Sequence record: NC_023719.1
Strand: one strand, 5' to 3'
DNA length: 64,000 nt
In this document: positions 1 through 55,204 of the stretch, piece after piece
How the letters are laid out: each line of letters begins with the position of its first letter
How positions within the stretch are numbered: the stretch's first letter is position 1
Notes under the pieces: model-generated
Databases searched by the model: none
What the model was told of the DNA's origin: nothing
The model's input: only the letters and a program-made list of their open reading frames with translations
Made by a program: the position numbers and the translations under genes

Positions 1-18
1 AATCCTTCTGTTTCTAAG

Positions 19-819
19 ATGACTGATAAGCTGATACCAGTAGCGTACCCATGGGAGATTATTTCTTTCACTTTTACCGATACAGATAAAGAAGTGTATA
101 CTGCTGCAACTGTAACGGCAGATACTCCACTTATTAGTTTAGCAAACGAAGGTGTAGTAATGGCGGTTACTAGAGCAGTTCAAGATCCTGGCTTAATTGC
201 AAAATTCGGCGTTAGAGTAGCTCCACCCGTAACGACTCCATTAGTGGGAGGATATAAGGGCGCAGAAATATATGCTAATATGCAAATTATAAGGTCATTA
301 GCTAATAGATATACTGGAACTCTACAGATGGTAGAAGAATCTTCAATAAGGGTGGGAGATCCAATAAGATTCCATATTTATGATGAAATACCATTTGCAG
401 AACAAATGGCTAGAGATAAGAAAAATGCTAATAGTGAAAAAAATGCGCAAGCTGTATTTTATGTTGATCAAATTGATAGATCAATTTCAATTAATGGTGT
501 ATCAACAATGTCATTATCGTTAAAAGCGGGAAGAATGATGGGTATGCCATCTATATATGATAAATGTACAGAACTTTATAGACCATTCTTTGAAAAGAGT
601 GCAGATTTACCGCAAACGCCTGAAGATCCAAAAGTTTCTCAAGCTGGTGGAACTTATAAAGTTAAAAAAGGAGATTCTTTATGGAAGATAGCTGTAACTG
701 TTTATGGAAATGGCGCTAAATGGAATGTAATTTATGAAGCGAACAGGAAAGATATGAAACGAGGTCCTTTAACTCAACCCGATAGGGTTTATGAAGGTCA
801 AGTCTTAAAAATACCGTAA
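19..819 (+). CDS. Baseplate hub/tail protein with C-terminal LysM domain (5'-truncated by window edge)
   Basis: Frame is open from base 1; C-terminal TYKVKKGDSLWKIA...IYEAN...PDRVYEGQVLKIP is a LysM motif; lies upstream of baseplate genes. Confidence 0.75.
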   Translation: MTDKLIPVAYPWEIISFTFTDTDKEVYTAATVTADTPLISLANEGVVMAVTRAVQDPGLIAKFGVRVAPPVTTPLVGGYKGAEIYANMQIIRSLANRYTGTLQMVEESSIRVGDPIRFHIYDEIPFAEQMARDKKNANSEKNAQAVFYVDQIDRSISINGVSTMSLSLKAGRMMGMPSIYDKCTELYRPFFEKSADLPQTPEDPKVSQAGGTYKVKKGDSLWKIAVTVYGNGAKWNVIYEANRKDMKRGPLTQPDRVYEGQVLKIP

Positions 820-825
820 TTTATC

Positions 826-857
826 AAACAACTCTTAATTTTAAGGGTTGTTTTTTT
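826..857 (+). terminator. Rho-independent terminator
   Basis: aaacaactcttaa/ttaagggttgttt stem followed by a T-run. Confidence 0.8.
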
Positions 858-959
858 ATTTTGTAAAATAAAAAGTGATTTAATAACTATTTATTTTAGT
901 AGGAGTATGAAAATAGATAATGCAAATGTTTTTCAAATAACAATAAAAGAAAGTTAAAG

Positions 960-1973
960 GTGATTAATGTGAATGTAAATAATTCATCTAGTGAAGGCAA
1001 CCAAATAGCATCGGGACCATCTTCTGGATTCGTTAGATCAACAATGACAAGTAATTCAGCAAATAAGCCTGTTTATGATGGAAAAGTTGATGAATACGGT
1101 AGCGTTAGACTAAGAATTGGTATTGTTGATAACCCTATGATAAAAAGAAATGCTGGTTCTAAAATAGAACCAACTGACCCATACAATATTGTCAATTTAA
1201 GAACTGGACATATAACAGTTAGATGGGCAGAGCAAGATGGTGGAGTAGTTAGGTCTTCTTCGTTTGGTTCATATGGAAAAGAAGGAGAGACTTCTGATAA
1301 AGAATCATTGGCTCTTACTCACCCAATGATATGGGCTAATGATAGTAATTGGTGCGGCATGAACTACTTACCGCCTATTGGTTCAGTTGTAGTAGTAGGT
1401 TTTAGAAAACATAATCAACCAATAGTGTTAGGCTATATACAGCCACATTATGAAGTTGTTACTGATATAGAATTAGGGGAAATAATGAATAAAGGTTTTG
1501 GTAATAATACTTCTCACTGGAAAATGCATGATGAACAAGAACATAAGGCTTGGGTAATGCAAAATGAATCAAGACCTGTAAAACATTTAAAAGATCAAGA
1601 TGGTAGGAAATATGAATGGAAACCCGCTCCTTATACTGTCGGATTAAAACTTAGATTAAAAGCTTGGATTGATCCATTTAACCCAGATGATAAAAAAGAA
1701 ATGGTAGAAATATATGCATATAAAATAAAAGATGGTGTTTTGTTGCATCATAGCTCATTAGAGGTAAGACCTGAAAAAGTGCACACGTGGTCCGAAGATC
1801 CTATAAATGGAAAAGTTCGTTCAGAACAAGTCATAACTCCAAGCTATGCTAAAATCGGAACATCGAAGACAGACTCTCCATCTTCATCATCTACTACTTG
1901 GTCACCTGGTTCTATAGTATCTGATGCAACAGACTTAATAAAAATGACAGCGGGAGTAATACAATTAAATTAG
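960..1973 (+). CDS. Baseplate spike/gpV-gp5-like protein (N-terminal OB fold)
   Basis: GMNYLPPIGSVVVVGF...PIVLGYI pattern typical of spike OB-fold domains; C-terminal beta-rich repeats; synteny. Confidence 0.65.
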   Translation: MINVNVNNSSSEGNQIASGPSSGFVRSTMTSNSANKPVYDGKVDEYGSVRLRIGIVDNPMIKRNAGSKIEPTDPYNIVNLRTGHITVRWAEQDGGVVRSSSFGSYGKEGETSDKESLALTHPMIWANDSNWCGMNYLPPIGSVVVVGFRKHNQPIVLGYIQPHYEVVTDIELGEIMNKGFGNNTSHWKMHDEQEHKAWVMQNESRPVKHLKDQDGRKYEWKPAPYTVGLKLRLKAWIDPFNPDDKKEMVEIYAYKIKDGVLLHHSSLEVRPEKVHTWSEDPINGKVRSEQVITPSYAKIGTSKTDSPSSSSTTWSPGSIVSDATDLIKMTAGVIQLN

Positions 1974-1984
1974 AGGTGTAAGGG

Positions 1985-2890
1985 ATGAGTATAGATGTTC
2001 AAATGTTTGTATTATGCGATCACTTAGTTAGTGGCACAGAAATAAATGATCCTATGGAAAAGCCTAAGTTGACTGTTGAATTTAATGCGCAATCTACTTT
2101 AGAACCAGGCACGTATTATGTAGTAAATACATTTATCAATAGACATGCTGATGAAACATGTAGAGGCCCTTTTTCAAAAATATATGTTGAAGAAAAACGA
2201 AGTTTAAACATAGAGTTGGCGCAATACTTTAATGAAGATTTAATTAGTACAAAAAATGTATATGTTGGTTATACAAAGGAGAATTTAACAAATACTCACT
2301 TAACTGATATACAAATAAAAAGAGAACAAGAAGTATTGAGTAATTTGAGTTTCCAAGATAATGTTATTAGAGGTATATATAAAATGACAGAATTAAAAAG
2401 AGTTGTCAAATATCCCCCTAGTAAAAATACTACAAAAACAGCAAATTACAATGGTAGGGAAAGTACTTGTCCGAAATGTCTTGGCAAGGGTTATTATTAT
2501 GACATTTATTTCGATAAAGCAGGTAAAGCTATTACAGCTACAAAATCTCAAAAATTACTTCAAGAATGTTTGAAAGTTTTAGTTGATGAAAAATTAGGTA
2601 ACAAATTCCACCCAAATTGGGGATGCGATATCGAACAAAGAATTGGAACAAAAAACATGGGTTCGTCTATAGAGATGTTAAAAGTTGAATTATCTGTTAG
2701 AGATGCAGTAGAAAGATTAAGAAAGTTACAAATGAATAACCAAATTATGTACGGAAATATGAACGAAGAAGAAATAATAGATACTATTGAATCTATAGAT
2801 GTAACAAAGGATGGACCTACTGGTTACAATATTGATATTGAAGTTGTTTCTGTTATGGGGGAAGTAATAACTTACAATATTAGATTATAG
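1985..2890 (+). CDS. Baseplate wedge gp25/GPW-like protein with N-terminal extension and CxxC motif
   Basis: C-terminal half LLQECLKVL...FHPNWGCDIEQRIG...IDIEVVS is gp25-like; CPKCLGKG motif; lies between spike and baseplate J. Confidence 0.7.
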   Translation: MSIDVQMFVLCDHLVSGTEINDPMEKPKLTVEFNAQSTLEPGTYYVVNTFINRHADETCRGPFSKIYVEEKRSLNIELAQYFNEDLISTKNVYVGYTKENLTNTHLTDIQIKREQEVLSNLSFQDNVIRGIYKMTELKRVVKYPPSKNTTKTANYNGRESTCPKCLGKGYYYDIYFDKAGKAITATKSQKLLQECLKVLVDEKLGNKFHPNWGCDIEQRIGTKNMGSSIEMLKVELSVRDAVERLRKLQMNNQIMYGNMNEEEIIDTIESIDVTKDGPTGYNIDIEVVSVMGEVITYNIRL

Positions 2891-2905
2891 GGATGGTGAT
2901 ATAGA

Positions 2906-4765
2906 ATGGAAATGAAAACGTTGAGTGAAATTGCAATAGGGTTAATATCACATATTCATGATGCTTTACCTGAAGTTGATACTAAAGAAGGTACATTCGT
3001 TAGGGATGTTTTTGTTGACCCAGTATCTACTCATATAGCTGAATTATATCAAGAATTAAAACTATTAGAATTAAGTCAATCTATTGTTACAGCTACAGGA
3101 GCTGATTTAGACAAATTAGCAAGAAATTTCTTCATTAGAAGAAAAGAAGCTTCATATTCTACTGGTAAAATAAGATTTTACCTTGGGTTAAATGAACCTA
3201 AAGAAGATATTTTCATTCCTCAAGGAAGTGTTGTAGGTTCGCCGGGCGATGCTAATACTGAACCAACGGAATATATGACTTCTATTTCAGCGAGTGTACT
3301 TGCTGGGGATAAGTCTACTTATCATTTGGATGTAGAAAATGGATTATTTTATATTGATGTAGATGCTATTTCGTTAGAACCAGGTTCACAATACAATGTT
3401 GGTTCTCATACTATTACATTACTTGGTGACGTTGTTGAAACTGAAGTAACATCTGTTACGAACCCATTCCCTTTTACAGGCGGTACTGATGCAGAAGATG
3501 ATTTAAGTTTACAAATGAGAGTTTCGATGGCTATCACTGGTGTAAATATTGGTACTAAAGACGGTTACATGTCATTCATGATGAAACAAAGTGAAGTTCA
3601 TGACGTTGTAGTTGTAGGTGCTGGTGATCCATTAATGACACGAGATAATGGTGAAGGTGGTATGGTTGATATTTATGTTAGGGCAGAAGATGCTGAAGAA
3701 TATAAAGAAACATTCTACGTTAGTGATGAATATACAACAGGAACAATACATGTAAAACCTTATGATAATATTATCCCAAAGAAACAGCCTATTATAATGA
3801 TAGATCGGATAATAGGCAGAATTCCAAATAGTTCTTCTGAGACTGGATATGATGAAAGAGTATATATTAATGGTTCTAACTACAAAAAAGAAAAAGGTTC
3901 AAATAAGTATTATCGAGATATTCTGTGGAATTTTGCAGATGTTCCAGTTGAAGGTTTAACTGATGATGACTTATTAGAAGCAACTGCTATTAATGTTTTA
4001 AATGTCTTACTTAAAAATATAACTTATTTAAAAGATATTAAGTATGATATTGATTGGCAAATGATAGACCCTTACAATGATAATAACAACCAAGATGATC
4101 AATATTTTTATAGAGGTTATTACAACGATGGGTTAGTTTATCTAATTACTTCAAGAAATGATGAAAATAATTCATTTATAGGTGGTAGAAATTTCATATC
4201 AAGAGATAAAAAAATATATGAAAGAATATACGTTGAGCCAGACTTTGAAATTGAACGTGATACAACTGAGTATGCGAAAAGTTATCAAGCAAAAGATTCT
4301 ATTAAGTGGTTAAGTACAGAAAGACATAGTTTGCCAACTATAGATGAAACCTTGCATATAAGTTATTCTTGGAATAGTGTTATTGATTCATTACAACAAA
4401 GACTTGAAGAAAAGAAAATATTAACAGCAGATGTTTTAATAAAACAAGCAAATGAAATTCCAATTGAAATCAAAATGAAAGTTGTACCTGATAGCGGATA
4501 TAACGCTAACGTAATTAGAAACAATGTTGTTGATAATATTTCTAGTTATATTAATGAAATGAATAAAATGGGTGGAGCTATTGATAGATCTGACTTGGTT
4601 TATTTAGCAAGAGGAACTGAGGGTGTGGAAGCTGTCGATATATCAAATGTACATTTATCAATTTTTGATTCTGCTCCTGTTCAGAAAATAGAACTTAAAG
4701 ATGTTGAATATATGAAGCTAGAAAGTATTTATATTGAAGTGTTGAAAGTAGGGACTATTGTTTAA
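2906..4765 (+). CDS. Baseplate J-like protein (enlarged by a central insertion)
   Basis: ATGADLDKLA, FTGGTDAEDDLSLQMR, VVVVGAGD motifs of baseplate J. Confidence 0.85.
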   Translation: MEMKTLSEIAIGLISHIHDALPEVDTKEGTFVRDVFVDPVSTHIAELYQELKLLELSQSIVTATGADLDKLARNFFIRRKEASYSTGKIRFYLGLNEPKEDIFIPQGSVVGSPGDANTEPTEYMTSISASVLAGDKSTYHLDVENGLFYIDVDAISLEPGSQYNVGSHTITLLGDVVETEVTSVTNPFPFTGGTDAEDDLSLQMRVSMAITGVNIGTKDGYMSFMMKQSEVHDVVVVGAGDPLMTRDNGEGGMVDIYVRAEDAEEYKETFYVSDEYTTGTIHVKPYDNIIPKKQPIIMIDRIIGRIPNSSSETGYDERVYINGSNYKKEKGSNKYYRDILWNFADVPVEGLTDDDLLEATAINVLNVLLKNITYLKDIKYDIDWQMIDPYNDNNNQDDQYFYRGYYNDGLVYLITSRNDENNSFIGGRNFISRDKKIYERIYVEPDFEIERDTTEYAKSYQAKDSIKWLSTERHSLPTIDETLHISYSWNSVIDSLQQRLEEKKILTADVLIKQANEIPIEIKMKVVPDSGYNANVIRNNVVDNISSYINEMNKMGGAIDRSDLVYLARGTEGVEAVDISNVHLSIFDSAPVQKIELKDVEYMKLESIYIEVLKVGTIV

Positions 4766-4789
4766 GGAATCTAAAGGGAGGGAAGAAAA

Positions 4790-7700
4790 TTGGAGAATTA
4801 CGAAAAAAAGCAAGCACAAATTGAAAGGATTTTAAGAGAACTAATTGAACTCCTTCCTTCATCTTATAATAGAGAGTCTACCGATACAAACTATTATAAA
4901 TTGTTAAGAGCATTAGCACATGAACTAGCTGATTCTAGAGTGAAAATAGAAGAGGTAAAAGAAAATGCTTATTTAGATACTGTACATCCAAACGCAATTT
5001 ATAATAATTTTGGTACGTTAGTAAGATTGAAAAAATCTCCAGAATGGGATGATGAAAAATATAGAGGTTTAATTCAAGGGGTTATTCAATCTTTACTAAT
5101 GGGACCGACTAAAGAGTCTTTAATAAAAGCATTTAAATTATTTACTAATTTTAATGTTCAAGTATATGAATTATATAAAGACGCTGATAAACTAGACCCA
5201 TCTATTTATGAAGGATATAACCCAAAATACACTTTTCTATTAGAAATAGAAAAGCCTTTAGATACCTACTCAGATACTGCAGCACTTCAGCGAGATGCAA
5301 ATTATATCATTGGTATATTAAAACCTGCCCATACTATTGGATTACAGATTACAAACTTAACCGATAGCGAAGATTTTAGATTTTACTACGGGGTAGATAG
5401 GCAAGTTAATAATTTAGCTAAAAATCTAATAAAAGAAAATATAAGTAATAGAGTAAATGAACTTGTATTAGATAATTTAGAGGAAAGAGCTAAGAAATTT
5501 GCTGAAAGTGAAAATATAAGATTAGAAGAAGCTCTGGACACTATATATAAACGAAATTATGGTATGTCTAGAAGCGACTATCAAAGTTATATATCCTACA
5601 GAGCTAGACTATTGTATGAAAACTATTTAAACTGTTTCTCATCAGATAGCAAAAGTTTAAATATAAATGAAGGATTAATTCCTACGTTGAACTTAAATAA
5701 TTTTAGTAGATTAGTTTTTGATGTTTTAATGAAAGAACACAATAGCACGTCTAATGCTAAAATGATAAGTAAACTTGAAATAAAAGGAAATGTAAACTAC
5801 GAAGCAGATATAAGAATGTTTTCTGGAGAAAACAAAACTTTTTCTTTTATTTTTAATGCTAGCATTGATGCTAAAATCGGTTATGCTCTTGAAATAGATG
5901 ACATCGATAAAACAATTAAACTTTTAAATATAAGAGACAATAAAGTATTAAGCTTTTTAAATTTAACACAAATATTAAAAAGTGGTACTGCTTTTAACTT
6001 AAAAATAAACTATACAAGAAATGAACAAAATTCAAAAAATAAATTAGAAGTTTTCATTGACGATTTAAAGACAATTGATGTAGAAATACCTGAATTCCAA
6101 GAGTGGCATTTCGGTTTCCAAACTGGAAGAGATTTAATAAGAATTTCAAATTTTAAAATTAATGATGTAAGTATTAAAGAATTTGAAAACAAATACGACA
6201 ATACTGATTCTAGGAACTTCTGGTCAATCCCTTTACAAGATAAAACAAAGGTACAATATGGAACTTGGTTTGAACAAGGGGAGTCTAAATACTTACTTGT
6301 TCAAGGTTTAATGGATAGCGCCCACATAAATCAATATATTGAGGGTTTATACTTAGATAGTATTGGTGCATTAACTGAAGATGATTTATATGAGAGAATC
6401 CAACTTGAAAAAGAAAGATTAAAAGCTATTTACATTAAGCAGGGTAATGATCCATCGCTTATAGAAGAGTACGAATGGGATAGAAAAGCAACAGAAAGTA
6501 TTAAGGAAGAACTATTCCGCAACGACATTATAGAGTCGCTTGGCGGTCCAGACAACTTATATAACTATTGTTTAGCGGAAGCAAGTAAATTTAAAGATGA
6601 TTACGAAGCAGCATATAGAAGCAATTTTCCGTATTTGGGTATGGACAGAGTTGATGTTGAGGGGGAAAATATTAACGATGAACATCGTTATGGATGGAAA
6701 CACCTATCGCATAAAGGGCAATTAACTACATCCATTGATCTAGACGGCCCTAAAATTGGTGGTGTCAATTTAATTGGACCTAGATTTACTTTACAGGATG
6801 ACTATATTTTAAAAGTAGATAGTATTAATTCTGAGAATGTTGATGTTAAGGGCATGAGTAATAAGCCTTATATTATCAATAGAATGAAAATATTTGATAC
6901 TACGCATAGTCTTGTAGCTAGTGAAAAAGAAAATTTAGAATCATATTATGTCCGTGGCCCTGGTTACGAAGAAACATATGATGTTACAGAAAATGTAATT
7001 GAAGAAAATATAAATGAAATAGAATTTGACTTTGCTGACATTTTTGAATTCTCTATTTACAGAAATGCATTTGTGTTGAATGTAAATGTTTTAAATGGAC
7101 CTGAAACTTGGGTTGATGAAGAAGCTGTTGATAGAATTGTATTCTTAGATGTAGATTTAGAAGAAGATATTGCATTTATTAAGAGTTCTTCTAACATAGT
7201 TATCAATAAATCACTAATAAACGGGAAAATGGACGTTATAGCTCCAAAAACAAACGGAAGACTAGATGAAGCTTGTATGGAAATGGAATTTGGTAGTGAT
7301 ACTTACGAGCTTGATATAAACTCGGATTTATCAGTATTTGAAAATGAGTTTGATGAACACTACTTAATGTATCCATTTAGAGATTCATTCATGACAAATA
7401 AAGATCGTATTAATCGTAAAAAGATTTATTTGATTTCCCCTGATCACTTAGAAATGGGTACCGAATTTGCTGAAAACATTGATTTTACTTCTAATACTAA
7501 AATTATAATCAATAATAGTCTAATTGGTTCTAAAGATATGCTTGTTATAGATAAAGAACGTTATGAAACAGACTTAGACGGATATAGCGAAACTTATAAT
7601 AAAGTAAAAGATGAAAACATCATAGAATACGAAGACGAAGAAACATTCTTATTTAGCAAATATAGAAACATGTTCCAATTGAACTATGATATGTTAAATG

Positions 7701-46423: not shown

Positions 46424-46456
46424 AGTTAAATACAAGATATGCATATCATATTATAA
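46424..46456 (+). promoter_or_regulatory. Putative phage middle promoter (variant)
   Basis: AGTTAAA-N18-TATTATAA. Confidence 0.5.
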
Positions 46457-46509
46457 CTACATCAAGATGATTGGTGTAGTTTTTTATATGCTAATAGAAA
46501 GAAGGTAGA

Positions 46510-47381: not shown

Positions 47382-47414
47382 TGTTAAATACACTAAATAT
47401 ATATCATATAATAT
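47382..47414 (+). promoter_or_regulatory. Putative phage middle promoter
   Basis: TGTTAAA-N18-TATAATAT. Confidence 0.6.
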
Positions 47415-47532
47415 CTACATCAAAAATATTTGATGTAGATTTTTTTTACATAGCAAACAAGGAAGGAGAAAATAGAGGTAAAGTATTTACCTAGTAAAAT
47501 TCATATCATATAAAAAGAATGGAGAGAGAAAA

Positions 47533-48282
47533 ATGAATATTTTAAAGAGAATTATACCTATCGCAGTGTTGTTAGTTATTTGGGGAGTAGGTAGTAATTT
47601 CACAAACCCTTTGTTTTTACCACAACCATCTAAAGTATGGGACAGCTTCTTATCGTTAGCATCAAATGGCATGATATTTGAAGACCTATGGTACTCATTC
47701 AAACGAATCACAATGGCAACTTTATTATCTGCTTCAGTCAGTATTCCATTAGGATTATTAGTAGCTAATTATAAGTCTGTTGATAATATTGTTACACCAG
47801 TAACAGGAGTTATGCGATATCTACCAGTAACAGCCTTTTATCCTTTATTAATTATGTGGGTTGGAATTGAGGAGTCAATGAAAATTACTTTCTTATTCTT
47901 CGCAACTATTTTCTTCTTCTTACCAACTGTAATTTTAGCTATTAAAGAAGTTAATGTAGATTTAATTGATACTGCGAGAACGATGGGTATGTCTAAATTT
48001 AAAGTAATGTTAAAAGTTTTATTACCAGCTTCTTTACCTTCTATTGCACAATCATTCTTAATGATGTATGGTATTGGGTGGACTTATGTTATCATTGCTG
48101 AAATGGTAAATACAACTAAAGGTTTAGGTCACTTAATGAATATTGGATCTGCTCGCGGAAGAACTGACTTAGTGTTCTTAGCTCTTATCATTATTTTAGT
48201 ATTTAGTTACTTATTCGATACAGTTGGAAATTGGGCAATTCGAAAGGTATTTAAATGGAAATTCATTAAAAATAAAAATTAA
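47533..48282 (+). CDS. ABC transporter permease (SsuC/TauC/NitT family)
   Basis: LPQPSKVW, RYLPVTAFYPLLIMWVGI.E, EAA loop LIDTARTMG...VLLPASLP, IIAEM. Confidence 0.92.
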   Translation: MNILKRIIPIAVLLVIWGVGSNFTNPLFLPQPSKVWDSFLSLASNGMIFEDLWYSFKRITMATLLSASVSIPLGLLVANYKSVDNIVTPVTGVMRYLPVTAFYPLLIMWVGIEESMKITFLFFATIFFFLPTVILAIKEVNVDLIDTARTMGMSKFKVMLKVLLPASLPSIAQSFLMMYGIGWTYVIIAEMVNTTKGLGHLMNIGSARGRTDLVFLALIIILVFSYLFDTVGNWAIRKVFKWKFIKNKN

Positions 48283-48288
48283 ACTTTT

Positions 48289-48321
48289 TGTTAAATTCTA
48301 TTGACAATATGATTATTATAT
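48289..48321 (+). promoter_or_regulatory. Putative phage middle promoter
   Basis: TGTTAAA-N18-TATTATAT. Confidence 0.65.
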
Positions 48322-48335
48322 AACCAAGAAAAGGA

Positions 48336-48536
48336 ATGAATGCGATGCTAAAGGATGAAAAAGATTTAAAACGGTACAAAATAAAAGAACCATTTAAGAA
48401 GTTTCTTATTAAACTCATACCTTGTGGAATTGGTTCATTTGGTGCTCATTTTTTCTTAGCAGAAAGTGGTTCCTCTATTTTAATACCAATCTTCGTTACA
48501 TTAGTAATGGCACACATTACTAGTAAAATTAATTAG
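48336..48536 (+). CDS. Small two-TM membrane protein
   Basis: 66 aa with two hydrophobic segments, inside the ABC cassette. Confidence 0.6.
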   Translation: MNAMLKDEKDLKRYKIKEPFKKFLIKLIPCGIGSFGAHFFLAESGSSILIPIFVTLVMAHITSKIN

Positions 48537-48554
48537 TAGAAAGGGGTTTAGGAA

Positions 48555-49184
48555 ATGTTAAGTTTAAAAAATATTTCACATTCATTCAAAGGTAAAACCA
48601 TTTTCAATAACTTCAATTATGATTTTGAAGTTGGTAAAGTACACGCAATCTTGGGTAAGAGTGGTTGTGGAAAGAGTACTATGTTAAGAATCATTTCTGG
48701 TTTATTAGAGCCAGAAAGTGGTACAGTTGAATACAATGGTACTGTTATAACGAAACCAAGCGCAGACATTTTCATGATGCATCAAAATTATGTTAATTTC
48801 CCATGGAAAAATTGCTTACAAAACATAATGTTCCCTATTGAGTTACAACGCAAAACAACTGAAGAAGATGTTAAGCAAGCAAAAACCTTATTAAAACGAG
48901 TTGGCTTGGAAGGCGCTGAATCTAAATACCCAGATGAGTTATCTGGTGGGATGAAACAAAGATTAGCATTGGCTAGGATTTTAATGAGTAAACCAAAAGT
49001 TATCTTAATGGATGAACCATTAAGCGCTTTGGATGAAAAAACCAGAAATGAAATGCAAGATTTGATCTTAGAAGTACAGAAAGAAACAAATAGCACAGTC
49101 TTAATGATTACCCATAGTAAGGAAGAAGCCGATAAAATGGCTACTAATATATTAACTTTAAAACCACACAAAGGGGAGAATTAA
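48555..49184 (+). CDS. ABC transporter ATP-binding protein (SsuB/TauB family)
   Basis: [30 protein letters not shown]. Confidence 0.95.
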
Positions 49185-49186
49185 TT

Positions 49187-49762
49187 ATGGCAAAGAAGAG
49201 CTTTTTTGAAAGAATTGGAGTAGTAAAAACTGAGGAAAGTGTAGATCATATTGCTGCGCGTTTAGAAGATATTGACTTAAGTGAATATGAAGGTGCTACT
49301 TCTTTTGAAGAAGAATTTGTACCAACTGTTGAGTTGCATGGGGAAGATTTCTTAACTATCGAACAGGTCTATGAAAAAGCAAATCTTACTGACACCGAAA
49401 AATCTATTTTTAAAGTCGATGAATATAGTAAAGTGTTACCAGATGGTATGACTACTGATATGAAACGTGCATCAGTTATTGGTATCTTAGCTGCTTCTAA
49501 ATTATCAATAGATGACTTAATTGAAGATGCTAATGAACGAATGGCTGCTTTGCAATCTATTAAAGTTTTAACATCTGAAAATACTTCTAATATTGTATCA
49601 AAAAATGAAGAACGTATTGTTGAGTTATTACAAGAAGTTGATAACTTGAAGCAAGAAAACAATGATAGAAAAAGTTCGCAAGAAAAACAAGATGCTTTGC
49701 TGGATGAAGAAATTACCATTGTTAATGGCATTAAGAAATTCATCGCGCCAGAATCTGTTTAA
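49187..49762 (+). CDS. Hypothetical protein with C-terminal coiled coil
   Basis: 191 aa; MAKKSFFERIG amphipathic N-terminus; operon position. Confidence 0.75.
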   Translation: MAKKSFFERIGVVKTEESVDHIAARLEDIDLSEYEGATSFEEEFVPTVELHGEDFLTIEQVYEKANLTDTEKSIFKVDEYSKVLPDGMTTDMKRASVIGILAASKLSIDDLIEDANERMAALQSIKVLTSENTSNIVSKNEERIVELLQEVDNLKQENNDRKSSQEKQDALLDEEITIVNGIKKFIAPESV

Positions 49763-49795
49763 TTAAAAATAATAAAATAATCGGAGGTAGTCGAC

Positions 49796-50536
49796 ATGGG
49801 AATTTTAATTGGAGGAGTACTAGTAGTTGGCTTAGCAGCATTGTTTATCTTTGGTGGTGGTAAATTAACTACTTTATTAAAAGGATTTGTAGGCGTATTT
49901 ATAGAAGATTTAACAAAAACACCCGAAGGTGCAGCGGCGGTCTACAATCAAGCTATTGAAAAATCTCAAGAACAATATAATATTGCTAATGACACTTTAC
50001 AAAAAGTTGCCGGTGAATTAGATACTGCTTTACGAGCTTTAAAAGATTTTGAAAAACGCCTTACTGATTGTGAAACTAGTTGTGAAAACTTTGCCAAAGC
50101 TGGTCAATTTGATAAAGTTGAATTGTTTGCACAAGAACGCGAAGTTATTATTGACGATATTGAAAATCAAAAAGCAATTATCGCAGAGTTAAAGCCACTA
50201 TATGAAGAAGCAAAAGTTATCAATAATCACTTAGAGGATAAATTAGTTAAACTTAAGAAAGAGAAAAATCGTGTTATCACTGACATGAAACGAAATAGTC
50301 AACTTAAGAGTATGTATGATGACATGGATGAGTTGAAAAATACTACAAATGTAGATAAGCTCCTTGATACTGTTAAAACTGGCGTTCAACAATCTCGTGA
50401 AAAAGCTGTTGGTGCTCGCACTGTTCATAATAATAAAACTTCTACTAAGGTTTCTGCTGCAAAAGAAGAAGCTAAGAAATTACAAAGTAATGATTATATT
50501 GAGCAACTTAAAAAGAAACACAATTATACAAAGTAA
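49796..50536 (+). CDS. PspA/IM30 (ESCRT-III-like) coiled-coil protein with N-terminal TM
   Basis: TPE...YNQAIE, long helical hairpin, LKKEK, ...EKAVGA pattern; GGAGG RBS. Confidence 0.65.
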   Translation: MGILIGGVLVVGLAALFIFGGGKLTTLLKGFVGVFIEDLTKTPEGAAAVYNQAIEKSQEQYNIANDTLQKVAGELDTALRALKDFEKRLTDCETSCENFAKAGQFDKVELFAQEREVIIDDIENQKAIIAELKPLYEEAKVINNHLEDKLVKLKKEKNRVITDMKRNSQLKSMYDDMDELKNTTNVDKLLDTVKTGVQQSREKAVGARTVHNNKTSTKVSAAKEEAKKLQSNDYIEQLKKKHNYTK

Positions 50537-50599
50537 TAAGTTTAGTTTTAAAATAGAGTTACCTCTTATTAATTAAGGGGTAACTTTTTAAATAATACA

Positions 50600-51028
50600 A
50601 TGAGGTGGAAAACAATGGAACAATTTAAAATTATTGATAAGCAAGATAAAATTTTAGCGTTTGGTTGTATTCTTGAATCGAAAAATGTAATATTAGAATG
50701 GACTAGTTCAATTAAGAATTTTTCTCTTTATGATAATGTTGAACAAGTAAAAGAATTCGTATGTAATGATCAAAAAGATGCAAAATTTGTAAGCCTTAAA
50801 AAAACAAGTAAAGAAAAATTAAGCGAGTATTTCTTACAAAGAAATGAAGACTTTAGTGGTGTTAGCGGAACTGGTGTGGTTGCAAAAGGAGTAATTTTAC
50901 CTTCAGGAAAATGCGTTCATGAGTGGTCTAATTCTTATGTGCAATCTCTTAATATGTATCCTAATATTAAAGCAGTAGAACATATTCATGGTCATGAAGG
51001 TAGAACTATTGTTAAGTTTGTAGAGTAA
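50600..51028 (+). CDS. Hypothetical protein with internal duplication
   Basis: DFSGVSGTGVVAKGVILPSGKCVHEW, with a degenerate first copy (LAFGCILESKNVILEW). Confidence 0.65.
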   Translation: MRWKTMEQFKIIDKQDKILAFGCILESKNVILEWTSSIKNFSLYDNVEQVKEFVCNDQKDAKFVSLKKTSKEKLSEYFLQRNEDFSGVSGTGVVAKGVILPSGKCVHEWSNSYVQSLNMYPNIKAVEHIHGHEGRTIVKFVE

Positions 51029-51029
51029 T

Positions 51030-51215
51030 ATGAAATATTATTGTGTTAGATATTTAATGTCATATACGTCACATCGTGAAAGTTTACGTTTTTGTTGGCA
51101 TTTCACAACAGTAAAGGCAATTAATAAACGAGAAGCTAAAAAACAAATAAGATCATTTTCTCGCACCGTATTTGTATTAAGTGCGAAAGAGGTATTGCAA
51201 AAATATCGTAAATAA
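51030..51215 (+). CDS. Small basic hypothetical protein
   Basis: 61-aa ORF directly after the previous gene. Confidence 0.5.
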   Translation: MKYYCVRYLMSYTSHRESLRFCWHFTTVKAINKREAKKQIRSFSRTVFVLSAKEVLQKYRK

Positions 51216-51412
51216 ACTTTACGATATTTTTTTGCTAAAAACAGTTTACATTAATCGAGATTGTGATATTATAAATATATAAGGTATTACCTTAAAGGAA
51301 GGAAGGAGATTATAAAGGAAGGAAACAATAATTAAATATTGAAAAATCTGTTAAAACTATTCCACTATTTGATTATTATTTATTTGTAAAACACAAAAGG
51401 AGGAATTTAGAA

Positions 51413-52990
51413 ATGAAGAAAACTAAATTAACGACAGCAGGAAAGGCGTTAATCTTTGGTCTAGTATTATTAATAGTGGCAGGTGTTACTTACTTTGCAG
51501 GTGGATTTAATGCAGTAAGCAATTTATTCTCTGGTTCCGATGATTCAGGTTCTACCCAAAGTGAAAAAGTTGATATCGTAGGTTCTGGTTCAACTAAAGA
51601 TGATGGAGTGATTAATGTTTCACTTGATGAGTGGATTGGTTGGAAATCGGTAATTGATGCTAACGGTGGTCTTGAAACAGCAAAAGGTTCTATTTATGAT
51701 AAACTTGGTATTAAAGTAAAAATTCACGTTATTAACGATGCAAATCAATCTTCAAATGCTTTAATTAAAGGTGACCTTGATGGTGCAGGTTATACAGTTA
51801 ATCGATATGCGTTCTTATATCCAAAGTTTAAAGAAAATGGTGTAAATGTAGTAATGCCATATGTAACAAATTTCTCTTCTGGTGGAGATGGTATCATTTC
51901 AAAATCTGATATAAATTCGGTTGAAGATTTAGTTGGTAAGAAAATTGCAGTTCCACGTTTCTCCGAAGCTCAAACTCTAGTTGAATGGTTATTAGCAAAA
52001 TCTGATTTATCTGATAAAGATGTAAAAGAAATTCGCAAAAACATGGTAATGTTTGATACTCCTGATGATGCAGCTAAAGCATTCTTCGCAGGTCAAGTTG
52101 ACGCAGCAGCTACATGGCAGCCATATTTAAGTCAAGCTCAAGAAACAACAGGTGCAAAACTTCTTTTCTCTACAAAAGTTGCTGAAAATATTATTTTAGA
52201 TGGTATCGTATTCCGACAAGATTTCATTGATAAAAACAAAGAAGCAGTTGTTAAATTCACTGAAGGTGCACTTGAAGCAATGGATTTATACACAAAAGAA
52301 TTTAGTCCTATTAAAGATACAATGCCTTTATTCGCAACTGAAAGTAATGAAAATATCGTTGCAATGGCTGGTGATGCTAAATTAGCTTCTTACAATGAAA
52401 ACAAATCATTATTAACAAATGAAGCAGTAACGTTATTCACTGATATGAGTAATATCTGGAAAACTTTAGGTGAAACTTCTTTCCCCGATGAAGCTAAAAA
52501 AGCATTTACAACATCAATTATTGATTCAGTTGATAGCAAGTTTGCTTCATCAGTAACTGCTGATACAAATAAACCAAAGTTCACTGAAGAAAAACGTCAA
52601 GAAGCAAAACAGGTTGATAATGTTAACTCTCTATTAAAACAATCAGCTACAATTGAATTCCAACCTAACTCTGCTGCATTTGCTAACGCCGCTGAAGCTA
52701 GTAAAGTTCTTGAAGAATTTGTAAAAACTGCTCAAATCTTAAATGGTTCAATCATTCAAATTGAAGGTAACGTTAATAATACAGGTGCCGGCAATGATGA
52801 AGCAATTAGTAAAAAATTATCTGAACAACGTGCTAAAGCTGTAGCGATGTACTTACAACAACAAGGTGTTGATGCTACACGATTCGTAGTAGTTGGTAAT
52901 GGTACAACAAAACAAATTGGTGATAACAACACTGAAGCTGGTAAGGCTCAAAACCGTCGTACAGATGTATTCTTCAAAATCGTCGAATAA
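51413..52990 (+). CDS. ABC substrate-binding protein (NMT1/SsuA-like) fused to OmpA-like domain, paralog 1
   Basis: N-terminal TM; S.GGDGII, DLVGKKIAVP, AAATWQPY, ILDG; C-terminal LSEQRAKAVA.YL...GVD..R...NRRTD. Confidence 0.9.
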   Translation: MKKTKLTTAGKALIFGLVLLIVAGVTYFAGGFNAVSNLFSGSDDSGSTQSEKVDIVGSGSTKDDGVINVSLDEWIGWKSVIDANGGLETAKGSIYDKLGIKVKIHVINDANQSSNALIKGDLDGAGYTVNRYAFLYPKFKENGVNVVMPYVTNFSSGGDGIISKSDINSVEDLVGKKIAVPRFSEAQTLVEWLLAKSDLSDKDVKEIRKNMVMFDTPDDAAKAFFAGQVDAAATWQPYLSQAQETTGAKLLFSTKVAENIILDGIVFRQDFIDKNKEAVVKFTEGALEAMDLYTKEFSPIKDTMPLFATESNENIVAMAGDAKLASYNENKSLLTNEAVTLFTDMSNIWKTLGETSFPDEAKKAFTTSIIDSVDSKFASSVTADTNKPKFTEEKRQEAKQVDNVNSLLKQSATIEFQPNSAAFANAAEASKVLEEFVKTAQILNGSIIQIEGNVNNTGAGNDEAISKKLSEQRAKAVAMYLQQQGVDATRFVVVGNGTTKQIGDNNTEAGKAQNRRTDVFFKIVE

Positions 52991-53061
52991 AAAGTAAAAA
53001 AATAAATAAAATATACTCCCCCTTTCATGGGGGAGTTTTTTAACAGAAAGGAGAATTAAAA

Positions 53062-54618
53062 ATGAAAAAAACCAAATTAACATTAGTTGGTAAAATCGTA
53101 ATCTTTGTATTCGTCTTAGCTTTAGTACTAGGTGGAGTATTCTTAATTGGTGGTTTTAATTTTTCAAAAGATGATAATGATACACCATCAAAAGATACAA
53201 AAACTACACAAAACAGTAATGTTAGTAATGAGCTTCCAAAAAATGAAAATAGTAACAATGAAATTAATTTGTCTCTTACCGAGAAGATTAGCTGGAAGCC
53301 AATTTTAGATGCCAATGGAGGGTTAACAACTCAACCGGGCTCAGTATACGATAAACTTGGTATTAAAGTGAACATTAAGATTGATGGAGATGCTGTAAGT
53401 ATCAGTAATGATTTTATTGAAAATAATGTAAACGCATTAGCATACACTATCAATAGATATGCAGGAACATATAAGAAGTTTAAGGATAATAACGCTGAAC
53501 CTATAATGCCTTACATTGTTGATTCTTCAGATGGTAGTGATGGAATTGTAGTGAAAGAAGGAATTAACAGCGTTAATGATTTCATTGGTAAAAAAATCGC
53601 TGTCCCTAATCTTACTGCAGCACAAACTATGATTTGGTGGTTAATGTTGAAATCCGATTTAAATGAAGATCAAATCGAAAAAATTAAAAGTAATATGACT
53701 CTTTATAAATCAACTGTTGCAGCTTCAGAAGCATTCTTTAAAGGTGAAGCAGATGTTGTTGTAACAAGACAACCATATTTAACTAACGCGAAAAATACTC
53801 CCGGAATGAAAGTTTTATTTACCACTAAATCAGCTAACAACCTTATCTTAGATGGGATTTTATTTAGAAAAGATTTTGCTGATCAAAATCCAGAAGTTGT
53901 ATCTAAGTTCATTGATGGAGCTTTACAATCCATTAACATAAATACATTTGATAACATCAAGACTATAGATATTTTTAAAGACAAAACTGATGAAGAATTA
54001 AATCAAATGTTAACTGAATTAAAGTTTAGTGACTATAGCGCAAATCATAATTTATTAAATGGAGTATCACAAGATCTATTTAATGATATGAATAAAGTAT
54101 GGAATAAAATTGGTGAATCAGTTGATAACGATGCAGCTAGTAAGGCGTTCTCCACTAAATTCATTGATGGTCTAAGCTCAAAATACACTTTAGAAAAAGT
54201 AGAGACTAAAACTGTCGATGAGGAAACTAGACAAAAAGCTTTATCTCAAGATAATGATGAAGCGTTATTGAAAAAATCAACAACAATTAATTTTAAATCT
54301 AATAGTGCAAAATTCGTTAATGAAGATGAAGCTAAAAAAGCTCTTAATGAATTTATAAATATTGCCCAATTCTTGGATGGCGCAATTATCCAAATTGAAG
54401 GTAATATTGCTGGAAAAGATAATTCAGAAGTTGGAAAACAATTATCGCTTCAAAGAGCGAAAACAGTAGCAGAGTATTTAAAACAACAAGGTGTTGATCC
54501 TTCTAGATTTGTAGTTGTTGGTAATGGTACTTCAAAACAAATTGCAAGTAATGACACTGAAGAAGGTATGAAGAAAAATAGACGTACTGATATAGTATTT
54601 AAAATTGTTGAAGAATAA
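53062..54618 (+). CDS. ABC substrate-binding protein fused to OmpA-like domain, paralog 2
   Basis: Same architecture and MKKTKLT start; LSLQRAKTVAEYL...NRRTD. Confidence 0.9.
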   Translation: MKKTKLTLVGKIVIFVFVLALVLGGVFLIGGFNFSKDDNDTPSKDTKTTQNSNVSNELPKNENSNNEINLSLTEKISWKPILDANGGLTTQPGSVYDKLGIKVNIKIDGDAVSISNDFIENNVNALAYTINRYAGTYKKFKDNNAEPIMPYIVDSSDGSDGIVVKEGINSVNDFIGKKIAVPNLTAAQTMIWWLMLKSDLNEDQIEKIKSNMTLYKSTVAASEAFFKGEADVVVTRQPYLTNAKNTPGMKVLFTTKSANNLILDGILFRKDFADQNPEVVSKFIDGALQSININTFDNIKTIDIFKDKTDEELNQMLTELKFSDYSANHNLLNGVSQDLFNDMNKVWNKIGESVDNDAASKAFSTKFIDGLSSKYTLEKVETKTVDEETRQKALSQDNDEALLKKSTTINFKSNSAKFVNEDEAKKALNEFINIAQFLDGAIIQIEGNIAGKDNSEVGKQLSLQRAKTVAEYLKQQGVDPSRFVVVGNGTSKQIASNDTEEGMKKNRRTDIVFKIVEE

Positions 54619-54633
54619 AAGCAGAATAATTTA

Positions 54634-54665
54634 AAAAACCCCTACTATTTATAGTAGGGGTTTTT
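54634..54665. terminator. Bidirectional terminator
   Basis: aaaaaacccctactat/atagtaggggtttttt. Confidence 0.9.
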
Positions 54666-54670
54666 AATTT

Positions 54671-55204
54671 TTAAAATTCTTCTATTTTAGTAATCTCATT
54701 TGTTGTAATAGCTTGAGGATACTTAGCTAAATCTAAATTCAATATATCGAAAATGCCCCCACCTTTAAATGGGTCTTCATCGGGAGTATATAGAATTGGG
54801 TCGTCTCCATAATGACCTTCAAAAGGTAAATAGTATTTTGAATTTTCTTCTCTACTACCACCAGCCCACTGCTTTAATTCTTCCTCAGTATATTCTGTTA
54901 ATTCTAGCGTTTTGTCATAATCAAATATATCATAATTAAGAACGTTGTCATCTGGTAGTAATAAATTTTCATCAATGTTTAAGTGTAGAACTACAGGGTT
55001 TCCTCCTTTTTGTTCAACAGTGTAGTCAGCAAAATCCTTAGCTTCTTTAAATTGATTTGTAACATAAACAAAGCTTGAATTGGAATCTTTAGAATTAGAA
55101 TTACCACTATTTGGTATAATGCCATTTTCTTTTATAGAATCTAAGTATATACTACTTGTACCGTGATAAAGAATTCTACTAGCTTTTCTAATTAGTCTTT
55201 TCAT
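54671..55204 (-). CDS. ADP-ribosyltransferase-fold protein (paralog 2)
   Basis: Minus strand (track label is wrong); LYHGTS...IKENGI.P, FVYVT...A..FA, PVVL.L...LLPD; GAGG RBS favours start 55204 (MKRLIRKA) over 55219. Confidence 0.7.
   Translation of the reverse strand: MKRLIRKASRILYHGTSSIYLDSIKENGIIPNSGNSNSKDSNSSFVYVTNQFKEAKDFADYTVEQKGGNPVVLHLNIDENLLLPDDNVLNYDIFDYDKTLELTEYTEEELKQWAGGSREENSKYYLPFEGHYGDDPILYTPDEDPFKGGGIFDILNLDLAKYPQAITTNEITKIEEF

Follow-up and report, generated by a model that had tools for sequence, protein, structure and literature searches.

The gp243–gp250 locus of Bacillus phage G

The stretch of DNA analysed here (the window, 64,000 nucleotides) belongs to the genome of Bacillus phage G (NC_023719; JN638751, 497,513 bp), and the module under study comprises genes gp243–gp250, all of which have the same orientation (plus strand). 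Window coordinates, used throughout, equal those of the record minus 124,000, and the 7.3 kb stretch compared matches positions 171,400–178,700 of the record with 100% identity. There, the cassette is annotated merely as 'ABC-like transporter permease', 'ABC transporter' and 'OmpA/MotB domain'. We found that the real unit at this locus is a five-gene operon, PACVS, named after its Permease, ABC ATPase, gp246-family Coiled helix, PspA/Vipp1-like protein and solute-binding protein (SBP) fused to an OmpA-like domain. The gene order in phage G is P-s-A-C-V-8-S-S. Each protein listed in an initial annotation of the window, made from the sequence, was present. The cassette sits within the replication block, with helicases, a primase, an NAD-dependent ligase, an HU-like protein and an RNA ligase on its 5′ side and gyrase B and A on the downstream side.

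Permease gp243 and ATPase gp245

Core gene P, gp243 (47533–48282), encodes a permease of the TauC/SsuC/NitT-TauT type with a BPD_transp_1 domain (PF00528, E-value 2.2e-23) and, according to hydropathy, multiple transmembrane (TM) segments. Core gene A, gp245 (48555–49184), encodes an ABC ATPase (ABC_tran, PF00005, 1e-32) that consists of a minimal nucleotide-binding domain (NBD) of 209 amino acids. The best NCBIfam matches were SaoP (1.8e-37), TauC (6.9e-31) and SsuC (5.9e-26) for the permease, all far below the equivalog cut-offs, and a taurine ABC ATPase (3.3e-55) for gp245. Equivalog-level identity to TauABC or SsuABC was not reached with the NCBIfam models, the scores being 107.7 versus 342 for TauC and 187 versus 357 for the TauB-type ATPase.

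The sequence of gp245 has a Walker A motif, a Q-loop, a signature, a Walker B/D-loop and an H-loop. Among 76 distinct ATPases, the Walker A Lys, the Q-loop Gln, the SGG..QR signature, the Walker B Asp-Glu pair, the D-loop and the H-loop His were invariant, and the coupling (EAA) loop of the permease was conserved as well (Gly in 72 and Pro in all of 76 relatives). These invariant motifs, together with the fixed gene order described below, led us to reject the idea of non-functional cargo. From their sequences, gp243 and gp245 are predicted to form a type-I ABC importer of the NitT/TauT class with intact catalytic and coupling motifs. The resemblance to TauABC/SsuABC lies in the best matches of permease and ATPase and in the NMT1/SsuA type of the SBP. 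The phage G system differs in that its SBP is TM-anchored and OmpA-fused, whereas those of TauABC/SsuABC are free or lipid-anchored, in that its NBD lacks any C-terminal domain, and in that all scores remain far from equivalog level. The homologous ATPases of the Lak-B1 megaphage (L003) and of a 735 kb uncultured phage (L004), of 329 and 385 amino acids, respectively, carry N-terminal extensions of about 100–130 residues that are absent from the 200–215-residue NBDs typical of PACVS operons.

The SBP-OmpA fusions gp249 and gp250

Core gene S is present in two copies, gp249 (51413–52990) and gp250 (53062–54618), which are paralogs with 47% identity. The bitopic protein gp249 is composed of a TM anchor, an NMT1/SsuA-type SBP and an OmpA-like domain (Pfam OmpA 3.4e-14, NMT1 6e-12, NMT1_2 8.5e-11); it also matched the NCBIfam model SsuA_fam (1.5e-27), below the 163.5-bit cut-off of the latter. 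The same TM-SBP-OmpA arrangement was found in gp250 (OmpA 4.6e-15, NMT1 5e-8). With 53.4 and 56.2 bits, the OmpA domains (PF00691) clearly passed the gathering score of 27.2. Profile searches against the PDB retrieved PA0833-PD (1.5e-20), YiaD and MotS, the OmpA-type matches ranging from 1.5e-20 to 1e-12. The nearest solved SBP was TauA (6ssy), a distant match (3.3e-8 over about 135 residues). In a large protein database, this NMT1+OmpA architecture recurred in more than 1,200 proteins.

A Cys within the first 45 residues was found in just 19 of 94 SBP-OmpA proteins, so most of them would be TM-anchored proteins rather than lipoproteins. The SBP is predicted to be held by an N-terminal membrane anchor and to carry a C-terminal OmpA-like domain of the peptidoglycan-binding type. 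In OmpA-like domains such as those of Pal and OmpA, a conserved pair of Asp and Arg residues contacts the peptide stem. The Arg was invariant (93/94) in the set analysed here, as was an NRRTD block. These two features, and a Pfam score above threshold, are shared with the OmpA-like domains of MotB/MotS, Pal, YiaD and PA0833, from which the phage G domain differs in being a C-terminal fusion to an SBP and, in gp249, in having Asn in place of the Asp.

The PspA-like protein gp247

Core gene V, gp247 (49796–50536), encodes a membrane-anchored, putative divergent member of the PspA/IM30 family within the ESCRT-III superfamily, with a TM segment at residues 1–28. PspA_IM30 (PF04012) was matched at E < 0.01 by 12 of 21 diverse members of the gp247 family; every other Pfam family drew a match from at most one of them. 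The best match (42.4 bits, 7.8e-11, above threshold) came from the ortholog in the fecal phage contig MT835556, which is 31% identical to gp247 (tblastn). The AlphaFold2 model of gp247, built with 25 homologs, has a mean predicted local distance difference test (pLDDT) score of 80.5, exceeding 90 in the hairpin core, and shows a TM helix followed by a short helix and then a long helical hairpin. Its best Foldseek match in the PDB was Vipp1 (6zvr, 3.5e-3), with further matches to Vipp1 (7o3w and 8qbs) and to Escherichia coli PspA (4whe) at E-values from 3.5e-3 to 2e-2. In a multiple alignment, the invariant K-T-P-E-G-A..Y.Q.I block of the family aligned with E-D-P-Q-K-L..I.E.M of E. coli PspA, at the alpha0/alpha1 junction.

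The PspA-like call made in the initial annotation therefore holds at the level of the family, with PF04012 matches in over half of its diverse members and Vipp1/PspA as top, marginal, Foldseek matches. There is a good case for gp247 as a divergent, membrane-anchored branch of PspA/IM30 when the family is considered, and an unconvincing one from gp247 alone. The helical hairpin, the alpha0/alpha1 junction motif and the Pfam matches in most orthologs are shared with PspA, Vipp1 (IM30) and LiaH. Where these proteins need LiaI, PspB/C or another separate protein as an anchor, gp247 has its own N-terminal TM helix; it is also very divergent, and no partners of the PspF, PspBC or LiaFSR type occur near the cassette.

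The orphan family of gp246

Core gene C, gp246 (49187–49762), encodes a soluble protein that lacks TM segments and represents an orphan family and fold. Its N-terminus is disordered and contains a short conserved peptide; next come a small helical head (residues ~58–103) and one helix that is about 80 residues long (108–186). The AlphaFold2 model has a pLDDT of 84, with values above 95 in the core. Relatives of gp246 formed 390 clusters at 50% identity. No match was retrieved in Pfam, PHROGs, NCBIfam, PADLOC or among PDB sequences, and structural searches returned no neighbour in the PDB (best E-value 3.8) and only gp246 itself in BFVD. We considered gp246 as a PspA-like protein and rejected this upon comparison.

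A gp246-like domain also constitutes the C-terminal 130–140 residues of proteins of 400–720 amino acids (L118, positions 4478–6637; P0234, P0269, P0307 and others), in which no Pfam domains were detected. The gene for the long protein of L118 follows those of an HTH_8 regulator and a diacylglycerol-kinase-like protein, with small unknown proteins nearby; no PspA was found in this context, and a PDB search was uninformative.

A five-gene operon shared by large phages and Clostridia

Loci were annotated with hidden Markov models built from alignments made here, those from IMG/VR being seeded by SBP-OmpA. All five genes were carried by 74 of the 80 IMG/VR viral loci, and in 72 of the 80 they stood in the exact PACVS order, with the gp246-family gene at a fixed position; most exceptions were loci cut by contig ends. 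The same order was found in 11 GTDB loci. This gene-neighbourhood search confirmed the co-conservation expected of a module for gp246 and the other core genes, whereas gp244, gp248 and a small open reading frame (ORF) at 51030, which had been included in the module, were not conserved with the unit. Many of the cassette-bearing viral contigs were 80–250 kb long. One contig of 558 kb was syntenic with phage G, both SBP-OmpA copies included, and a terminase-bearing contig of 261 kb also held the cassette. Given these phages and the chromosomal copies in Clostridia described below, a transporter carried by a phage is less unusual than the initial annotation had supposed.

Searches with gp249 (tblastn) retrieved a full-length SBP-OmpA in MT835556 (44% identity), adjoining the gp247 homolog, as well as likewise full-length SBP-OmpA proteins in all Lak megaphages (28–30%) and in the 735 kb uncultured phage. 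In Lak and the 735 kb phage, two coiled-coil/TM proteins and SBP-OmpA precede the permease and ATPase, which follow directly in the 735 kb phage and after three small ORFs in Lak. When profiles were compared, the smaller coiled-coil protein of Lak (229 amino acids) matched the gp246 family weakly, though in register (E-value 7e-4, probability 27%). Considered as PspA counterparts, the 353–355-residue TM/coiled-coil proteins of Lak and the 735 kb phage gave no significant hhalign result and had no PDB match, and their only homologs were Lak copies without annotation.

A pattern-seeded scan of 185,579 GTDB species representatives yielded 22 loci, nearly all in Clostridia. In three Oscillospiraceae isolates, 34–35 of 36 flanking genes were common with IMG/VR phages, and these loci are prophages; that of Dysosmobacter lies between NAD-salvage and methylase genes on one side and a phage replication module on the other. 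In this Dysosmobacter segnis prophage (L032, positions 1–3530), the block immediately upstream of PACVS comprises two DNA methylases and NAD-salvage genes for an isochorismatase/nicotinamidase-like protein, a phosphoribosyltransferase, a NAMPT/NAPRTase and an NAD synthase. Other copies are chromosomal. One of them is bounded by pyruvate-formate-lyase genes and a divergent MerR regulator at one end and by dnaB-rplI-gdpP at the opposite end; a second has LexA, Rho and VanW before it and ArgRS and L32 across from them; a third is a neighbour of ypeB. A minimal four-gene version was flanked by PilZ and major facilitator superfamily genes.

A distinct layout, type B, was found in rumen and gut Clostridia. 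It consists of SBP-OmpA, the permease, the ATPase, a TM/coiled-coil protein of 244 amino acids with no Pfam match and a second SBP-OmpA; the genes next in line encode an SBP_bac_11+VWA protein and, divergently, TelA (L017, 3954–11903; also L014, L016, L018, L020, L022, L028 and L030). Neither a gp246-like gene nor a recognizable PspA gene was found in type-B loci.

A tree built with IQ-TREE from 59 representative SBP-OmpA proteins paired both gp249 and gp250 with their corresponding copies in the 558 kb contig, which places the duplication before the split between this contig and phage G. The duplication is specific to the phage G lineage. Type-B loci formed a cellular clade of their own, and the sequences of Lak and the 735 kb phage formed a distant one. 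A gut clade mixed viral and genomic sequences, one of the latter chromosomal, and supported branches forced at least 6–7 label changes. The PACVS operon is passed to and fro between large Bacillota phages and the chromosomes of Clostridia. Complete PACVS operons or SBP-OmpA homologs were also found in two metagenome-assembled genomes, one labelled Betaproteobacteria from a termite gut (L024) and the other labelled as an archaeon (P0108); their contigs are probably mis-binned phage or Clostridia contigs. The sequences of L024 and L021 sit on very long branches of the tree.

Relation to previously described operons

Operons of this kind are known from comparative genomics. Ravi et al. 2024 (mSystems, PMC11237479) described PspA/Snf7 operons that also encode an ABC ATPase, a permease and a 'PBPB+OmpA' protein for solute and peptidoglycan binding, and suggested that they tie the transport of solutes to membrane remodelling. 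They note that an AAA+ ATPase may or may not be part of such operons, and that it is unexplained how PspA assembly is regulated without one. The phage G cassette and the Ravi operons share a TM-bearing PspA-superfamily protein, an ABC ATPase, a permease and an SBP-OmpA fusion. The operons in the portion consulted (PMC11237479) are longer and have the AAA+ ATPase, and a gp246-family protein is not mentioned there; the phage G copy, in turn, is phage-borne, has a duplicated SBP-OmpA gene and contains two inserted genes. We found no gene for a Vps4-like or double AAA+ protein in or beside the cassette, either in phage G or in the PACVS contexts examined.

More recently, Yuan and Chen 2026 (bioRxiv 10.64898/2026.10.24.761521) reported 189 pspA genes in 184 huge phages, 15 of which (15/189) adjoin a complete ABC transporter with SBP, ATPase and permease. 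The preprint gives this one sentence, and in the text consulted we found no OmpA fusion, no gp246 partner, no gene-order statistics and no mention of phage G by name. Our literature search retrieved no paper on the phage G cassette and no experimental work on the operon. The module is therefore uncharacterised in the experimental sense, as had been claimed; its architecture is not new, being present in Ravi et al. 2024 and in the 2026 preprint, and the phage G copy is a further member of a computationally noted operon type. The present analysis adds a fixed fifth component, the orphan-fold gp246 family, as well as the strictness of the gene order and the exchange between phages and hosts. The operon is notable for its spread in large phages, not for being unprecedented.

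Promoter-like motifs and terminator-like hairpins

A pattern search for TGTTAAA-N15-20-TATWAT found six matches in the window (28526, 44758, 47382, 48289, 51349 and 63708), all on the plus strand and all intergenic, where 0.64 would be expected. They lie just 5′ of gp220, gp239, gp243, gp244, gp249 and gp257, and one of them precedes the head-maturation protease gene. The motif probably represents a promoter class of phage G, with a −35-like box that we take to resemble the late-promoter box CGTTAGA of SPO1. Three copies fall within the region of the cassette: TGTTAAA-N18-TATAAT 5′ of gp243 (47382–47412), one 5′ of gp244 (48289–48319) and one 5′ of gp249 (51349–51379). The initial annotation had placed promoters at the first two sites, both of which fit the pattern, and had overlooked the third; the middle-type timing that it gave them found no support here.

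Three terminator-like hairpins were noted on the same strand. One with a 12 bp stem and a T-run (47413–47440) ends the gp242 unit and directly abuts the motif at 47382–47412, so transcripts from this putative promoter would start within the 5′ arm of the hairpin. A GC-rich hairpin with a T-run occupies the gap between gp249 and gp250 (53015–53036) and could act as a terminator or an attenuator, and a hairpin with a 14 bp stem (54634–54665) closes the cassette. The hairpins at 46455–46481 and 47413–47440 bracket gp242 and have nearly identical stems (CTACATCA...TGTAG), of which the window contains two copies versus 0.04 expected. The idea of a repeated terminator was dropped, these two copies being the only ones and both bracketing gp242.

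Proposed function of the operon

The cassette is most reasonably read, in line with the initial annotation, as an envelope module in which the SBP is tethered to the wall and another protein protects the membrane. In the form that we favour, and to which we assign about an even chance, the operon supports the host envelope during infection: the PspA-like protein, probably aided by gp246, would preserve a tight and energised membrane, and the importer would bring in a small solute captured at the wall. Expression in the course of infection would start from the phage's own putative promoters, the operon lying within the block of replication genes. SBPs tethered to the wall may pick up the solute to be imported, which is probably anionic or zwitterionic, and a membrane-anchored PspA polymer, probably with gp246, could stabilise the cytoplasmic membrane and the proton-motive force through a long, high-burden infection. 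Consistent with this are the envelope-stress neighbours (TelA and VWA) of the type-B loci, the phage-specific promoter motifs before gp243, gp244 and gp249 and the flanking terminators.

Several observations weigh against this interpretation. The canonical OmpA Asp of the G-H-T-D motif varies among the relatives (N in 34, D in 32 and A in 20, with Asn in gp249); as this peptidoglycan-binding residue is not conserved, it is not certain that the domain binds the wall. SBPs of known ligand are no more than distant relatives of this SBP. On its own, gp247 scored 10.8 bits against PspA_IM30 (E-value 0.36; cut-off 33.9), and the E-values of its Foldseek matches are marginal, generic long hairpins such as p85 iSH2 and YscO scoring about equally. 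A profile of the gp247 family run against PDB sequences gave generic coiled-coil noise and no PspA or Vipp1, and hhalign of the family against the single E. coli PspA sequence was not significant, so that the PspA assignment depends on the Pfam matches of the orthologs and on the fold. Gene linkage is the single observation that points to a coupling between transporter and PspA-like protein, and the function proposed for the phage G cassette is inferred from sequence and models.

The operon might instead be an auxiliary nutrient importer that takes up a limiting solute for phage replication, PspA and gp246 just buffering the stress of transporter insertion. Candidate solutes would be sulfonates and other sources of sulfur, nitrate, nicotinamide, or precursors of pyrimidines or pyridines such as hydroxymethylpyrimidine (HMP) or formylaminopyrimidine (FAMP). 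The complete set of parts under strong purifying selection, the NMT1/SsuA/TauA class of the SBP and the location of the cassette in replication or nucleotide-metabolism blocks, next to the NAD-salvage block in the Dysosmobacter prophage, would all fit such a role, and invariant SBP residues common even to the Lak copies (28% identity) suggest one conserved ligand. Nutrient import would leave unexplained, however, why PspA and gp246 are fixed in the same order in 72 of 80 loci and why the SBP is always fused to OmpA; moreover, the neighbours of the type-B loci are stress genes (TelA and VWA) rather than metabolic ones. We regard it as unlikely, if the strongest of the alternatives. Import of thiamine or nucleotide precursors, which the initial annotation had suggested together with superinfection exclusion, found no direct support, the match to TauA being distant (3e-8) and the PADLOC matches generic; the same applies to exclusion. 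A role in superinfection exclusion, defence or counter-defence at the envelope, for instance by blocking the entry of competitor DNA or by countering membrane-damaging abortive infection, would agree with the presence of the operon in many large phages and prophages and with the resemblance, at domain level, of its OmpA domains to the peptidoglycan anchors of ZorB; PspA is, besides, known to counteract membrane damage. Yet PADLOC-DB v2 identified no known anti-phage defence system, only generic matches to ABC ATPases (Mad3, AriA) and the MotB domain (ZorB), and the stand-alone chromosomal copies are found among housekeeping genes rather than in defence islands. Such a role is the least probable of those considered.

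The obligate linkage of the five genes, with ORFs that overlap or abut, could also reflect a trans-envelope sensor and actuator. The doubly tethered SBP-OmpA would report the status of wall or membrane, or a wall-derived ligand, and the cycle of the ABC ATPase would, via gp246, drive or gate both assembly and disassembly of the membrane-anchored PspA polymer, a role played for ESCRT-III by AAA+ proteins of the Vps4 type. A minimal NBD that lacks a regulatory domain would suit this scheme, as would a soluble gp246 whose conserved N-terminal peptide and long helix are appropriate for bridging. It would also speak to the regulation of PspA assembly without an AAA+ ATPase, which Ravi et al. (PMC11237479) note to be unexplained. 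Against it, BPD_transp_1 permeases that work with SBPs are generally classical importers, and gp246 has no structural precedent in the PDB or BFVD; interactions among the components are conjectural. We know of no mechanotransducing BPD_transp_1 permease with an SBP, which counts against the scheme too. It is, in our opinion, quite unlikely. In its most integrated version, which we hold to be more doubtful still, all five proteins would form a single machine, in which SBP-OmpA, tethered to wall and membrane, senses the state of the envelope or a wall-derived ligand, the ABC cycle relayed by gp246 powers PspA remodelling and an ABC transporter replaces Vps4. If true, this would be an ESCRT-III system of bacteria and phages, repeatedly captured by large phages to keep the membrane energised until lysis.

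Returning to the role in envelope support, the question bears on why phages with large genomes invest in host-envelope functions, on how PspA homologs are anchored and regulated without PspF/PspBC or LiaI partners, and on the role of the orphan gp246 family. The operon is found in dozens to hundreds of large phages from gut, rumen and soil, in prophages of cultured Oscillospiraceae and in Clostridia chromosomes. As a cultivable jumbo phage with a laboratory host, phage G offers an experimental handle on an operon known from comparative genomics, and the strict order of the five genes and their exchange between phages and hosts make cheap and clear genetic tests possible.

Genes outside the conserved unit

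Two genes of the phage G cassette were found in no other locus and are therefore insertions specific to this phage. The small protein gp244 (48345–48536; longest ORF from 48336) has one C-terminal TM-like segment according to hydropathy; it had no Pfam, PHROG or NCBIfam match and no homolog in about 100 related loci. The unrelated small gene gp248 (50615–51028) matched phrog_7499 (7e-39), and a counterpart was absent from L005 and all other cassettes examined. Its C-terminal part (50691–51019) is 75–78% identical in nucleotide sequence to the Bacillus phages vB_BanS_Nate and PBC2, both ~167 kb phages of the B. cereus group, a closeness that no other part of the cassette comes near. It seems to be a small gene of recent transfer that came to lie between the genes for the PspA-like and SBP-OmpA proteins. 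The ORF of 61 codons that follows (51030–51215, plus strand) is doubtful as a gene, since it is unannotated, lacks a Shine-Dalgarno sequence and has no family match.

On the downstream side, the cassette adjoins the convergent gene gp251 (54671–55204, minus strand), which encodes a protein of 177–182 amino acids. Weak matches to the RNA 2′-phosphotransferase (Tpt1/KptA), DUF3990 and BT_3044-like families suggest an ADP-ribosyltransferase-like fold. At the same position, the 558 kb contig related to phage G has a minus-strand gene for a protein of 185 amino acids, for which phmmer gave no link to gp251. Upstream, gp242 encodes a protein of 286 amino acids with weak P-loop, AAA_33 and Zeta-toxin-like matches, and genes for the NAD-dependent ligase and an ADP-ribosylglycohydrolase lie a few genes from the cassette.

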